A stretch of 64,000 bases of DNA from Kudoa neothunni. Lineage: Eukaryota > Animalia > Cnidaria. The stretch is from the NCBI GenBank assembly GCA_964304625.1, contig OZ199840.1:8643487-8707486 (forward strand), written 5' to 3'. Below, in pieces: positions 11,050 to 59,372 of this stretch; within the stretch, counting starts at the first letter, position 1, and every line of letters begins with the position of its first letter. The notes beneath the pieces were generated by a model. The model was given only the letters and a program-made list of their open reading frames with translations. It was not told the origin of the DNA and searched no databases. A program made the position numbers and the translations under genes.

Positions 11050-14000
11050 TTAATTTTTCTTCTTAAAAACAACGAACCCAATAGCACCCAAGATCAAAGC
11101 TCCAATGACGGCTACCGCAATCATTCTAAAACAATATTAATTAAAGTTTAAGAAAGTATTAAAATAATACATGACCATAGTTTTAGAACTAAATAAAAAA
11201 TCAATTAATTTTATAAATATTAATCGAACAAACCTTGAACTGCTTTTAGCTCCTAAAAGAAACAATCTAAATTATCTATCTAATATACTATGTTTTACCT
11301 TGCTCAATAATAGCCATCCCATAAACTGTTGGATCGGTAGAACTGTACACAGTCAAGTGATAATTGTTGCCATCTGCTAATCCATTGATAGTGAATTTTC
11401 TGCATGATGGGAACTTTCTACATCCAATATCACTGCGACTCATGCATTTCTTAATAATTGCAAGCGATTTGGCACTCGCATTACGTAATTCCCATCTACA
11501 CTTGGAATTTTCATTAAGACTTGATGGAAGGGTGTTTTCTATAACAAATGATTCACCATCCCTTGTTATTGTCACATATATTATTTTGTCATTTTCTGTT
11601 GGATTCCCCTTTGGAGCAGCTATTTAAGACGAGTAGATTTATTATTAGTATTAATATCAAAAATATTCTTACTAGCTACTAACGTAATTTCTTTTGGATC
11701 CGATTTTCTCACTGCAGTAATAATCACTTTATACTCTTCATTTGCATCATAATCGTTGAATTTAATAGAACTACACAGTGGAAATGAGGAGCATGTGTTT
11801 AAATGGGTCGGGTTCGCATTTGTAGCAGCTGTGGTGGTTGAAGCGACATTGCTATCAGTTTTAGGTTGCGAACTAGATTCAGATCTTGCAATTTTTAATC
11901 CATTAATTTTTGATTTTAGACCTTGAATTTGACTAACACTAATTTGAGGTTGGCTAGGGTCTAGATTAGGATTTTGTTCGACTGGTGGGTTTTGTGGAGT
12001 ATTTTGAGCTTGTGGAGCAGCTGCTGGCGTCTGTGATTCTTTGCAAACGTAAGCATCTTCAAACTTGTCATCTTTTTTTACTTGGATTGTATAGTGGCAA
12101 ATGGCTTCTGGGACTTTTTTGGACAATTGTGCATTCAATTCCAATCCTTGCTCGGTGTATTTTTGAGTTATAATCAAGGTTGCCAGACCTATAATGGGTT
12201 GAATGAGTTAATATTTAGATAAATATACTAGTTGTAACATTTGTATATATGTGTTCTTTGTACTCCTTGTCAGCAATGACCTTAATATCGTAAGAAGTAT
12301 TTGGTTCAAGATCAATTATTGTTATTGGATCTCTACATCTTCCTCTACAGGGATTTGTTTCAGTACATTTAGCGGTGTAAAAAGTATTTTTCCCAGCTTG
12401 ACTTAAATAATATTCACAGTTCGGTTCATTTGCCTTATTTCCTTCAGCTGCACCTCCAATAGCTGTTAATGTAGTTGTTGATTCTGTTTTAGTAGGGGAG
12501 ATTGCTTGAAAATTTTTATTATCCTCATTATCTAGTAAATATTATTACTTAAGTTAATATTAAATTTTAAGTTATTACTTGTTCTTATTAGTATTTGTTC
12601 TTTAAAATCGGTCGGATTTGATATATCAGATTCAATTTCGATGATGTATGGTTTTCCTGGTGATAGTTGCTCAATTACTAATTTTTCACATTCAGTTTTA
12701 CAATCACCGCCACTATCCTTTCTACTATCCGTATTACATTTAGTGGTTAATGAAGTATGTTTTATTTTATCAGCAGGGTAATGTTTGAGGGTACAAGTAG
12801 AAAATTTGGTCACAGACCCTTGTTTTAACAATGTTCCGTCAAAAGATACACCACTTGTGGTATATGCAGATAATAATGCGTTTTCATTCTCGGATATTGC
12901 TAATTATTTAATATATATATATATATAATAAGTTAAAATAAAATACGAAATTTTTTTTGGGAAAATCCATTTGAATCAGCATCGGTAGGTTTTGAAAGAT
13001 CGTGATGTCTGGTTTGGATTAAGACGTTGTAAATATCTTTGGGTGTAGTCAGAGTAAGCTCAACATCTTTGCATGGTGCGTAACATTTTCCATTCTTATT
13101 TCCACAGTTTGTTTCGAATATTAGATCATTACCTGCAGAAGTACCATCTTTAATACTGAAAACGCAAATTTCAGAAGATAATGCCAAATCAGTGAATTTA
13201 AGAACAACTTGATTAGAAGCTCCTGTCTTCTTTGTTACGTAATATTGAGGTTTATATATGGCCATATTTCTCTTCATATATGGGTTTGGCATATGATAAA
13301 AGAAACTCGGATAATTCGCACATGTCATCTCATAATGTGGAATAAATAAATCGAAATTTGTAGAATTTTGTTGATTATCAGCATCGCAACTTGTTTGTAC
13401 GGTTCCTCCCACGAACGTCGCGTCTTTGTAGTGGATGGGACACGCAACTGGAGGGCAATTTTTTGATAAAAGTTTTAGTTTCTTACTGTCATCAACAGAT
13501 ATTGTTATTTGGGGATTTACCAGCAAAACTAAATTTAATGAAATAATTTATCGATTTAAAATTATTTAGATTACGTGCGGCCAAACCAAACACTTTTCCA
13601 CCTTTTGGATATGCTTCTGCTTTAACAGTGTTCTCTTCAGCATTATCATATACATACATATATTTTGTTCGTGGGGTGAGTTTATTATATGGAACTTTAC
13701 TAGCTTGACTATCGCAGGTAATTATGCACCTATCGTTGCCATCGGTGCTAATCTTTCCAGGGCAGCTAGTAATTTCTTCATATGCAGCTATTCCGGTTTT
13801 GCTACTATCGTTAGCTGCTTCATTAGACTTCAATAATCGGCACTTTTTATTATTCGAATAAGTAGAACCACCAAGTACGTGCTTTACCACGTTTAACCTA
13901 GTGCCAGTATCATACTCAATTTGGTACTTGAGTGTTGCTGGAGGATCAGGTGTTACATTATTTTGAACCAAATAAAGATATGTAATGTGTACAACTATTA

Positions 14001-14070
14001 TTTGTTAAATAATTATGATAAAACATTAAGTACAGAATAAATAAATCAGGAATTTATGTTTCGCTATCAT
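11050..14070 (-). CDS. Cys-rich FN3-like type I membrane protein, paralogue R-A (10 exons, ~870 aa, intact)
   Basis: ATG 14070 (MIAKHKFLIYLF/FVHITYLYL, hydrophobic leader). Introns at 13995-14033, 13529-13574, 12900-12946, 12532-12578, 12189-12228, 11620-11672, 11253-11298, 11189-11233 and 11126-11170 give a 2613-nt open CDS. FN3-like strand motifs IIDLEPNTSYDIKVIA, IEQLSPGKPYIIEI and INGLADGNNYHLTVY. Ends with TM IAVAVIGALILGAIGFVVF then KKKN*. Confidence 0.88.
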
Positions 14071-56462: not shown

Positions 56463-59372
56463 TTAGTCATTTTTCTTTTTTCCGATGAAGAATGCGATTC
56501 CCCCTATCAAAAGTACCACTCCCGCAACAGCTGATACGATTATTCTATCTATAAATTAAACAACTCAAGTAACAAATTATTACATCATTTTCATGTTTGA
56601 CCTAAAATTAAAATTTTGTTAGATTATCTTATATAATTATTTAGTAGTAAAATTACTTTGCACTACTTTTTTCACCTAAAGAAAATAATAAAAAAATAAT
56701 TTTTAATTTATTTAATACCTTGATTTATTGCAGCTGTTCCATAATATGTCGGATCAGACTCCAAGTATACGATTAAGTGATAATTGTTTGATTCTGGCAA
56801 GTTATCAATGGTGAAACTTGCACATTTTGGAAATTTGGTGCATTTAGAATTCCGCGCCATACATGATCTCACAATTAATTGTGATTTTGCACTAGTATTT
56901 TTTAGTTCCCATTTACATTTTGACTGTTCGTTCACTTTTGTCGAATGATGAGTTTCCACTGTGAATGTAGTTCCATCTCGTGTTATTGAAACGTCTAATA
57001 CTTTATTAGTGTCTGTTGGATTTTCTTTAGGCTTATCTAATCGTTGATTAATACAGATAAATTTGAAATTAAAATTTTTACTTGAAGGGATATCAATTGT
57101 TTGTTGTGTAGATTTTCCTGTGGCAGTCACCAAAACTCTGTATTCATGGTTTGGGTCGTAGTCGGTGTTGAATACAATAGATTTGCATGATGGCATATTT
57201 TGACATGTCTTTGAAGTGTTATCATTAGTTTGAGCAGTATTTGCTGTTGTTGTGTCTCCTGCTCTAGCTATACTTACTACCTCTGATTTTGATCTAATTG
57301 CAGCATTTTGAGGAATTTGAGGAGAATTTTGAGAAGACTCGGGAGACGTAGGAGTAGGTGGATTAGTCGGGACTGGGGCAGGGCATACAAATATCGACTC
57401 ATAATCATTACCCTTTTTAATTTTTACATCGTATTCACACAGGGCTGGAGTTTTTGTCGATAATCGTGCATTCAGCTCGAATCCTTCCATATTGAATTTA
57501 TGGGTAATTGATAGTGTATCCAATTCTAACGAAATTTAGTATTAACAAGATAAAATAATATAGATTTACTAGTTTCAACTGCCTTATAAATATGTTCCGC
57601 ATAATCTTTATGAGCAACCACTTTGATGTCATATTGAACACCAGGTTCTAGACCGACGATTCTTTTAGTATCCTTACAAAAGCCTCTACATGGCTTGCTG
57701 TCTTCGCATGACGCAGGATAGAAATTATCTTTTCCTGTCAAACTTATATGATATTCACATGTTGGTTCTGTTGTTTTATCATTGGTTACCGTACCATCAA
57801 CAGCTGTAAGGGAGGCATCGGATGCTGTTGTTGTTGGAGTTGTAGCTAAATAAGTCTTTTGAGCGCCACTTTCTTAATAAATATTAATATTGTCTGAAAC
57901 ATTAAATATATTTACTCGTTCTGTAAAATATTTTTTCTTTAAAATCTGAAAAACTGGCAATTCCTGTTATAACTACTTCAAAAATATATGCCCTGCCAGC
58001 AACAAGACTTTTTACAATCAATTTGCTACATTCCGTTTTGCAGGTACCCCCGTCACTGCTTCCTGAGCTACTTGAAGCATCACATTTAGCAGTTGCTTTC
58101 GTGGCTAACTCGAGTTCATCCGCAGGATAATGCTTTAGAGTACAACTCCCTCCAGTAGTAGGTTTGAGGAGTTCGGAATTTAAAGTTACACCTACATTTG
58201 TGTAATCTGATAATAATCCCTCACCTGACTCATTGATTGCTAAAAAAATTTAGCGGAATTCACCTCCTTCGTTACACAAATACCGTATTTATTTTGGGTA
58301 TAGCCGTCGTAAGTTTTTTCAGCCTTTTCTGTTAAGATATGATGCCTTGTTTGGATTACGACGCTGTAGACTGATTTAGCTGCAGATACGGTCAAAGTAA
58401 CATTTTTGCAGGGGGCATAACATTCACCTTCACTGTTACCACATTTTGACTCATAAGTCGCAGTGGCTGCAGCGTCTTTAACACGAAACACACAAATCTC
58501 ATGTGATGGGCTATTAGTAAATTTTAAAGTGATTTTGTTATCTTCAGTATTTTTAGAAACATAAAATTGTGGTTTGTAAATTTCGATGTTTTCTTTCATG
58601 TACACATTGGGCATATTGTAAAAAAAGCTTGGATAATTTTGACACCTCATTTCATAATGTGGAATTAAGAGATCAAAATCAACTTGATTATATTGTTGTT
58701 CAGTATTACAATCACTTCCTGATGTTCCTACTTCGTATACCATATCCTTGTAAAGAATTGGGCAGTTGACTGGTGTCCATGTTTTTGCGCATAACTTTAA
58801 CTTTTTTGAGGTATTGTCTATTGAAATAGAAATTTGGGGATTAACAAGCAATGCTAAATTTAAATTGATTATTAATAAAATTTAAAATCACAGTTACGTG
58901 CTGCCAAACCAAATACTTTTCCACCTTTTGTTTGAGTTTCTGTATTAACAGTCCCTGCGTTAGCTCCAGCAAAAATGTAAATATATTGTGTTCTGGGAGA
59001 AAATAAATTAAAGTCTATTTTTATATTGTCCCCAGCACAAACTCTAACACATTTATTGTTCGAATTGGTTGTAGAATCCCCATTAGGACAGGATGTGATT
59101 TCGGCAAATGTAACAGTACTGGCGTTTGTACTAGACTTCCTTATGCGGCACGTTTTACCACTGGTAGTATATGTACTTCCAGTTAAAATTAGTTGAACTT
59201 TGAATTGATTTCCATCAGTGTCTTTCACAATCTGATATTTCACTTGTTCTGTTGGAGCAATGGGAACTTTTCCGGCACAAAACGTTTGGTTAATAATAAC
59301 TAAAAAAGTTTATGAGCGAATAGAAAATATTAAATTACTAAATATGGAAAAAATATTAAAAACAAACAACAT
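56463..59372 (-). CDS. Cys-rich FN3-like type I membrane protein, paralogue R-C (10 exons)
   Basis: ATG 59372 (MLFVFNIFSIF/IIINQTFCA). Collinear with R-B, with the same micro-exons, TM and KKKND* tail (stop 56463-56465). Confidence 0.88.

Follow-up and report, generated by a model that had tools for sequence, protein, structure and literature searches.

A large family of membrane-anchored proteins built of FN3-like modules in the fish parasite Kudoa neothunni

CD45, the LAR-type phosphatases and the class I/II cytokine receptors are type I membrane proteins whose ectodomains are tandem arrays of fibronectin type III (FN3) modules, with one phase-1 exon per module. In CD45 and the cytokine receptors, some of these modules carry extra disulfides, and CD45 also contains a mucin-like, O-glycosylated segment. 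Here we compare these and other described systems with three genes, called A, B and C, in a 64,000-nucleotide stretch of the Kudoa neothunni genome (the window; positions 8,643,487 to 8,707,486 of contig OZ199840.1, contig 3 of the assembly). K. neothunni is a parasite of tuna muscle. The myxozoans are economically damaging fish parasites, and to our knowledge few molecular details of their host interface have been worked out. The three genes, known here from DNA sequence alone, belong to a family of about 190 membrane-anchored proteins that has apparently not been described so far.

The Kudoa modules find their best structural matches in the metazoan FN3 arrays of CD45, the LAR-type phosphatases and the cytokine receptors, and one of them, D6, has an insert comparable to the mucin-like segment of CD45. 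In contrast to these receptors, the Kudoa proteins have no phosphatase domain, Box motifs or WSxWS motif, appear to have another two-disulfide pattern, show no significant sequence match in Pfam or the PDB, and are encoded in about 190 copies in one small genome. The variant-specific surface proteins (VSPs) of Giardia are likewise a large parasite family of type I proteins, in which a variable ectodomain containing cysteines is joined to a conserved helix and some five tail residues, but they are CXXC-rich, are not FN3 proteins and end in a fixed CRGKA tail, whereas the Kudoa cysteines amount to ~3% of the residues and are arranged in FN3 modules. Two further systems can be likened by description. 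The cestode oncosphere antigens EG95/45W are a small, parasite-specific family of FN3-based proteins, secreted or anchored, that face the host; unlike the Kudoa family with its seven modules and ~190 copies, these flatworm antigens have one FN3 domain each and are encoded by only a few genes. The Alr proteins of Hydractinia are a clustered cnidarian type I family with tandem Ig-like domains and a variable distal domain; unlike the Kudoa proteins, whose tail has 4-5 residues, they combine Ig-type domains with signalling tails.

Module anatomy and predicted fold

Each of the three proteins consists of a leader, seven β-sandwich modules (D1-D7), one membrane helix and a lysine tail of 4-5 residues. 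In the numbering of gene B, exon 1 encodes the leader and D1, exon 2 encodes D2 and D3, and exons 3-6 encode D4, D5, D6 and D7, respectively. The original prediction, read from the DNA letters, had described three paralogues of ~850-870 residues with a leader, about six repeats mostly encoded by one phase-1 exon each, one transmembrane segment and a 4-5 residue tail. The genes proved real and intact, with clean GT-AG models at the coordinates of Table 1, and the leader, the transmembrane segment and the tail are seen in all three. The limits of the predicted span are exact, 11050 being the last base of the stop codon of A and 59372 the ATG of C. The length estimate fits A (870 residues) and is too high for B (835) and C (837), and the number of repeats has to be raised to seven, five of which have one exon each while D2 and D3 share theirs.

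Over ~27 paralogues, D1, D3, D4, D5 and D7 have the common spacing C1-x16-21-C2-x5-13-C3-x3-5-C4, followed by Leu-x-Pro ... Tyr-x-Ile-x-Val. The four-cysteine pattern that had been ascribed to every repeat holds for these five modules, with the spacing in D5 invariant in 27 copies. It does not extend to D2, where the spacing is different (x4, x17, x21); in D6 the four cysteines are kept, and a Pro-, Ser-, Thr- and Gln-rich insert of 58-87 residues separates C2 from C3; and D4 has four cysteines in A and C but two in B and its close kin. We noticed that C1 and C4 are jointly absent, with C2 and C3 kept, in 10 of 28 D4 copies, including that of gene B, and that the first and third cysteines of D2 are jointly absent in five external homologues. 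The joint loss of C1 and C4 in one subfamily points to a C1-C4 pair that staples strand B to strand E, although the 10 D4 copies are close kin, which makes this a suggestion and not a proof. The pattern suggests disulfides that join C1 to C4 and C2 to C3 in the FN3-like modules; in D2, the pairs would be 1-3 and 2-4. A paralogue on contig 3 at ~8.733 Mb (L098:1847-2179) has a run of six glycines in the C2-C3 loop of D4, which shows that this putatively disulfide-closed loop alters its length through simple-repeat expansion. In total, there are 27-29 cysteines per 835-870 residues and one or two tryptophans per protein; a Tyr-corner signature was found in D1, D4, D5, D6 and D7, and a tryptophan after C1 in D7 only.

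An aromatic and cysteine-containing motif had been taken for a separate, strongly conserved module. The conservation was borne out, in that the six-residue core of the motif has 208 matches in the genome compared with 19 for a reversed control, but the motif is not a module of its own. In the predicted model, it makes up the final strands of D2 and the stretch that leads over to D3, and it probably acts as a rigid inter-module joint.

Two exon-level stretches of gene B, the copy used for folding and searches, were folded with AlphaFold, each with an alignment of paralogues and external hits. The stretches cover D1-D3 and D6-D7, and each reads through one short in-frame intron, seen as a disordered linker. 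The D1-D3 model has a mean predicted local distance difference test score (pLDDT) of 78.6; D2 and D3 are mostly at 80-93, and residues 26-140, corresponding to D1, are mostly strands with a pLDDT of 67-88. The D6-D7 model (mean pLDDT 66.3) contains two well-formed sandwiches and a disordered segment. Here the D6 sandwich is formed by model residues 14-66 and 118-160, while residues 67-117, which are the Pro/Ser/Thr insert, have a pLDDT below 30, and D7 is at 70-85.

When the models were compared with the PDB using Foldseek, almost all matches were tandem FN3 proteins (E ~6e-5 to 1e-3, probability 0.94-1.00), including gp130, the common beta chain, fibronectin, contactins, integrin β4, and interferon and interleukin receptors. 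The Foldseek-independent aligner VIA gave Z up to 9.4 for two-domain rows. In these alignments, D6 matched CD45 d3-d4 (Z 9.0, root-mean-square deviation (rmsd) 2.8 Å, 84 aligned) and LAR FN5 (Z 8.8), D7 matched the FnIII-4 domain of integrin β4 (Z 8.7, rmsd 3.0 Å, 88 aligned), and D3 matched FN3 domains of gp130 and the leptin receptor (Z 6.6-7.0). D2 matched unspecific Ig-like sandwiches, such as the Ig-like domain of RgpB (Z 7.5), and D1 is FN3-like in array alignments. The seven-strand FN3 sandwich topology was thus found in D3, D6 and D7 over 82-89 residues, at rmsd 2.8-3.0 Å and Z 7.0-9.0. Because a VIA Z below 8 can reflect a common arrangement, the assignments of D6 and D7 are the firmest and D2 is best termed Ig-like. 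The models of these five modules agree with the expectation that the repeats adopt FN3/Ig-like sandwiches.

By sequence, the family matches no characterised family in Pfam or in profile searches of the PDB, as had been anticipated. The best Pfam fn3 score, 15.5 bits, was obtained for exon 4 (D5) of B. D5 is the sole module with a recurrent, sub-threshold fn3 signal, present in 19 of 27 paralogues with a best E of 0.004, and D7 gave no Pfam fn3 hit. Among PDB sequences, profiles of D1-D3 and D6-D7 had no match with an E value under 0.24, titin being the best, and searches of the ESM Atlas by features and by shape returned nothing usable. Neither WSxWS nor RGD was found in A, B or C. The 4-5 residue tail does not contain the cytoplasmic Box1/Box2 of class I cytokine receptors, and with ~3% Cys and another tail the proteins fall outside the definition of Giardia VSPs (>=5% Cys, many CXXC, CRGKA tail). 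In a profile-profile comparison of clean module alignments, no pair of modules scored below E 1e-3, indicating that the modules are repeats at the level of fold and motif only. An apparent homology between D1 and D3 (hhalign E 1e-9) was discarded as an artefact of three D1-only fragments aligned under D3.

Family size, relatives and evolution

The searched genome comprises 40,260,978 bases in four contigs. In six-frame searches, exons 1-2 gave 113 scored matches of 659 candidates, exons 5-6 gave 156 scored matches, and exon 4 (D5) gave 150 matches, all stop-free and with E at most 2e-21. We also counted the aromatic six-residue core with a degenerate DNA pattern, using the reversed pattern as a control, and the excess over the control corresponds to ~190 family copies, any broken ones included. 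A, B and C are thus paralogues, as predicted, but they are far from the whole family. Copies are present on all three chromosomes and are often arrayed; the window lies at the start of one array, and more copies follow up to ~53 kb past its end. The published K. neothunni assembly (PMC12239612) spans 40.2 Mb and includes a mitochondrial contig of 18,219 bp; its scaffold N50 is 12.0 Mb, repeats make up 45.6%, the median intron measures 49 bp, and 5,316 proteins are predicted. Relative to that number of proteins, ~190 copies would be a sizeable share of the gene content. The family is mentioned neither in the genome paper (PMC12239612), where the terms fibronectin, gene family and surface are absent, nor in the searchable literature.

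Outside this genome, relatives are extremely rare, in line with the proposal of a lineage-specific family. A full HMMER scan of 1.84 billion protein representatives returned 17 matches, 11 of them below E 1e-10. Ten of the external hits were looked up, and each proved to be an unnamed singleton in a Logan or ENA assembly; the six that were traced represent four samples, with three hits from one run. Two contigs from other AT-rich genomes, L011 and L123, contain collinear genes with 25-42% identity and one module per exon; L011 carries D1 to D6, and L123 carries D1 to D5 and D7, then a membrane helix and a three-lysine tail. Both L123 (1-4611) and another contig of the same run, L012 (1-5664; SRR31175926), have a GC content of 17-21%, and they contain several family members. 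L012 also has SNF5 and S14 genes on opposite strands, which are 44-51% identical to a pair in K. neothunni that lies 5.5 kb apart on contig 3 near 1.35 Mb and adjoins family copies. The source of L012 and L123 is therefore probably another, distant myxozoan in which gene order has been conserved; conserved gene order has been reported for Kudoa (PMC12239612).

The tandem neighbours B and C show how family members diverge. Their DNA identity in exons 1 to 6 is 61, 83, 65, 92, 88 and 97%, with D1 as the most divergent module (61%). The introns flanking exon 3 are 98% and 100% identical while the exon itself is 65% identical (52497-52817 vs 57916-58239), which looks like a cassette-like replacement of a module with breakpoints at or near the splice sites. 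The ratio of nonsynonymous to synonymous divergence (dN/dS) between B and C is 0.07-0.51 in every module, and on these ratios all modules are under purifying selection. The synonymous divergence itself is 1.0-1.4 in D1 and D4 compared with 0.11-0.22 in D5-D7, indicating that a single gene pair is made of segments of very different ages, which is a signature of gene conversion or exon replacement. Diversifying selection is not supported, because in no module does dN/dS reach 1, and dS is high as well where the two genes diverge. A pseudogene or transposon cargo was considered and rejected in view of the intact gene models and of dN/dS well below 1. Over ~27 copies, the most conserved modules are D2 and D5, and the least conserved are D4, D6 and D1.

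Membrane anchor and proposed role

We think it probable that A, B and C all function, and that the Kudoa-lineage family to which they belong forms an extended, glycosylated coat or adhesin at the plasma membrane. Each would be a type I membrane glycoprotein made of a leader, a rod of seven tandem β-sandwich modules, a short stalk, a helix and a lysine tail. Most of the FN3-like modules would hold two disulfides, C1-C4 from strand B to strand E and C2-C3 closing the loop before strand E, and this loop would vary in length and become the long mucin-like insert in D6. The stapled sandwiches and the mucin-like insert would produce an extended, protease-resistant, glycosylated rod of seven modules, at roughly 3.5-4 nm each, and the modules may bind host or parasite ligands at the parasite plasma membrane. 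Diversity would arise from tandem duplication, then patchy gene conversion under purifying selection. As had been foreseen, the proteins have no signalling domain of their own, since the cytoplasmic tail is only 4-5 residues long; without a cytoplasmic domain, they can act only outside the cell or in a lumen, through the ectodomain. The proposal as a whole is supported by the genes of other samples, in which the entire architecture, including the membrane helix and the short basic tail, is kept at 25-40% identity.

Several observations weigh against this proposal. No module reaches the gathering threshold (25 bits) of Pfam fn3 (PF00041), the VIA Z values, at 6-9, exceed the background given for the aligner by a moderate margin only, and D4 and D5 lie outside the folded stretches, so that their assignment comes solely from the cysteine and strand-F motif that they share with the other modules. 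In other eukaryotes, a tail of the type found in A, B and C causes membrane proteins to be returned to the endoplasmic reticulum (ER). It is also not obvious why Kudoa plasmodia, which are enclosed in muscle fibres, should need a large variable coat. In addition, very few transcriptome reads mapped to K. neothunni (PMC12239612). If the family is a surface coat, its members would be candidate diagnostic or vaccine antigens, and the family would be a new example of a reduced animal genome investing in one expanding family. The stapled FN3 modules with their disulfide-closed variable loop may also be of structural interest as a natural binding scaffold.

Between D7 and the membrane, two putative microexons of 19 and 18 nucleotides encode a Ser/Lys-rich stalk in a canonical GT-AG model that keeps the frame. 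We observed that this stretch (51128-51299 in B, 56545-56718 in C and 11126-11298 in A) can be read in two ways. In the first, there are two microexons and three short introns; in the second, the second microexon is skipped and an intron of ~108-116 nucleotides results; both are in frame. The microexon model is provisional because skipping the second microexon also keeps the frame and splicing is predicted from the DNA. Among 40 other copies, a strict script found the 19 + 18 nucleotide pair in only 7. The hydrophobic stretch of 22 residues, the tail and the stop are all encoded in the last exon.

The tails of A, B and C contain a canonical dilysine signal, with Lys at -3 and at -4 or -5, and the lumenal location that had been offered as an alternative rests on this signal. 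The proteins might then be residents of the early secretory pathway, in which the dilysine binds COPI and sustains Golgi-ER cycling and the lumenal FN3 rod works as a cargo receptor or a chaperone-like binder. No other known signal would fit into so short a tail, and the canonical dilysine recurs in 15 of 38 other copies with a recovered last exon. However, the remaining 23 of these 38 copies lack it, either with tails mostly of a Lys-Asn-Lys/Arg-x type after an aromatic-rich helix end or without Lys at -3, and the L123 homologue ends in a likewise non-canonical tail, with a Tyr before three lysines. Of the 38 copies, 37 have two or more basic residues among the last six. Judged from these tails, it is a very short basic tail that is conserved, which would be expected of a simple stop-transfer anchor, and the dilysine is a feature of a subfamily. 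The limited occurrence of the signal among the sampled copies suggests that ER retention is no family-wide trait. In addition, ~190 divergent paralogues are hard to square with a housekeeping role in the ER, and we regard this explanation as unlikely.

A structural role or adhesion within the parasite, in the spore valve or suture, the polar-capsule matrix or the cell-in-cell junctions, would do without a direct host ligand. FN3 arrays are common in matrix and junction proteins, and stapled modules with a mucin-like insert would suit a mechanically robust extracellular layer. Such a layer, however, rarely needs ~190 paralogues with module-level mosaicism, and nothing links the genes to spore stages, so that this role too seems doubtful.

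The mosaicism itself, together with the size and the arrayed, gene-converting nature of the family, the variable membrane-distal D1 and the cassette-like exon 3, recalls a programmed repertoire, either of variant surface antigens with one or a few members expressed at a time and switched, as in the Giardia VSPs and the variant surface glycoproteins (VSGs) of trypanosomes, or of self/non-self recognition, as in Hydractinia Alr. The layout is also like that of Giardia VSPs, with a variable ectodomain, a conserved helix and a tail of about five residues. Against such a repertoire, dN/dS stays below 1 throughout and dS, too, is high in the divergent segments. Neither an expression site nor a switch element was seen, and the most conserved modules, D2 and D5, are located mid-rod, which does not fit a simple variable tip on a constant stalk. 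We give it only a slim chance. A related and similarly speculative possibility is a variable host-interface repertoire of ~190 recombining FN3-rod proteins that are selectively expressed, so as to change the coat of the parasite or to recognise various host or partner cells, with most members kept back in the ER by the subfamily dilysine as a gate. If true, this would be an animal-lineage counterpart of the protozoan variant surface-protein systems, built on a different fold.

The least probable of the alternatives is a glycosylphosphatidylinositol (GPI) anchor, with the small residues of the first microexon as the cleavage site, the second microexon as the spacer and the hydrophobic exon removed to leave a mature protein without the lysine tail, because GPI signals normally end at the hydrophobic stretch and 37 of 38 copies add at least two basic residues here, like genuine membrane anchors, even though A, B and C have a Ser/Ala/Gly run ~7-12 residues before the hydrophobic stretch.

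Gene models and neighbouring genes

The splice sites of the three genes (Table 1) were picked from frame-compatible GT-AG pairs and from homologous positions across the three copies. The joined frames are open from ATG to stop under the standard code. Introns are 39-55 nucleotides long overall, and those bounding the modules (39-53 nucleotides) are all phase 1 and GT-AG; the two that follow the microexons are phase 2. The leader is interrupted by an additional short intron in A and C but not in B.

Table 1. Positions in the window of genes A, B and C and of their parts
Feature	Coordinates	Strand	Description
Gene A	11050..14070	(-)	870 aa, ten exons; open joined frame, all introns GT-AG
Gene A exons 1-5 (high..low)	14070-14034, 13994-13575, 13528-12947, 12899-12579, 12531-12229	(-)	
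Gene A exons 6-10 (high..low)	12188-11673, 11619-11299, 11252-11234, 11188-11171, 11125-11050	(-)	
Gene B	51046..53906	(-)	835 aa, nine exons; no internal stops
Gene B exon 1	53480..53906	(-)	signal peptide and D1; hydrophobic leader, four/five-Cys beta module
Gene B exon 2	52862..53437	(-)	Ig-like D2 with aromatic motif and FN3-like D3
Gene B exon 3	52497..52817	(-)	D4, variable cassette; assigned by Cys and strand-F motif
Gene B exon 4	52151..52453	(-)	D5; assigned by Cys and strand-F motif
Gene B exon 5	51663..52106	(-)	D6, predicted FN3 module with disordered Pro/Ser/Thr-rich insert
Gene B exon 6	51300..51617	(-)	D7, predicted FN3 module adjoining the membrane
Gene B stalk	51254-51236 (19 nt), 51186-51169 (18 nt)	(-)	two putative microexons
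Gene B last exon	51046..51127	(-)	transmembrane helix and five-residue Lys-rich KKxx tail
Gene C	56463..59372	(-)	837 aa, ten exons; tandem to B
Gene C exons 1-5 (high..low)	59372-59339, 59299-58898, 58853-58284, 58239-57916, 57872-57570	(-)	
Gene C exons 6-10 (high..low)	57525-57082, 57036-56719, 56675-56657, 56601-56584, 56544-56463	(-)	

A ciliate-type genetic code was considered for the 1-2 in-frame TAA codons seen in many genome matches, and was rejected because the window genes splice cleanly under the standard code; the TAA codons in six-frame matches are best explained by reading through the short in-frame intron between exons 1 and 2. We also noticed that the introns at 53438-53479 and 51618-51662 in B and at 57037-57081 in C are stop-free and multiples of three in length, which is why open frames of 362 and 285 residues span two exons; retention of these introns would add 14-15 residues between modules.

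Gene C is ~2.6 kb upstream of B on the same strand, and A is separated from the two by 37 kb that contain Kunitz-domain and MRG-domain genes. Other open frames, of 80-145 residues, are located at 21952-24515 (-), 31754-32191 (-) and 49325-50395 (+), with no Pfam match where they were scanned (49325-49976 left out). The Kunitz/BPTI open frames between A and B are at 18802-19080 (+) and 37981-39176 (+), with E values of 9e-7, 4e-9 and 1e-3. The MRG-domain open frame at 41270-42705 (-), with E 2e-11, encodes a MORF4-related chromatin protein and is an ordinary housekeeping gene.

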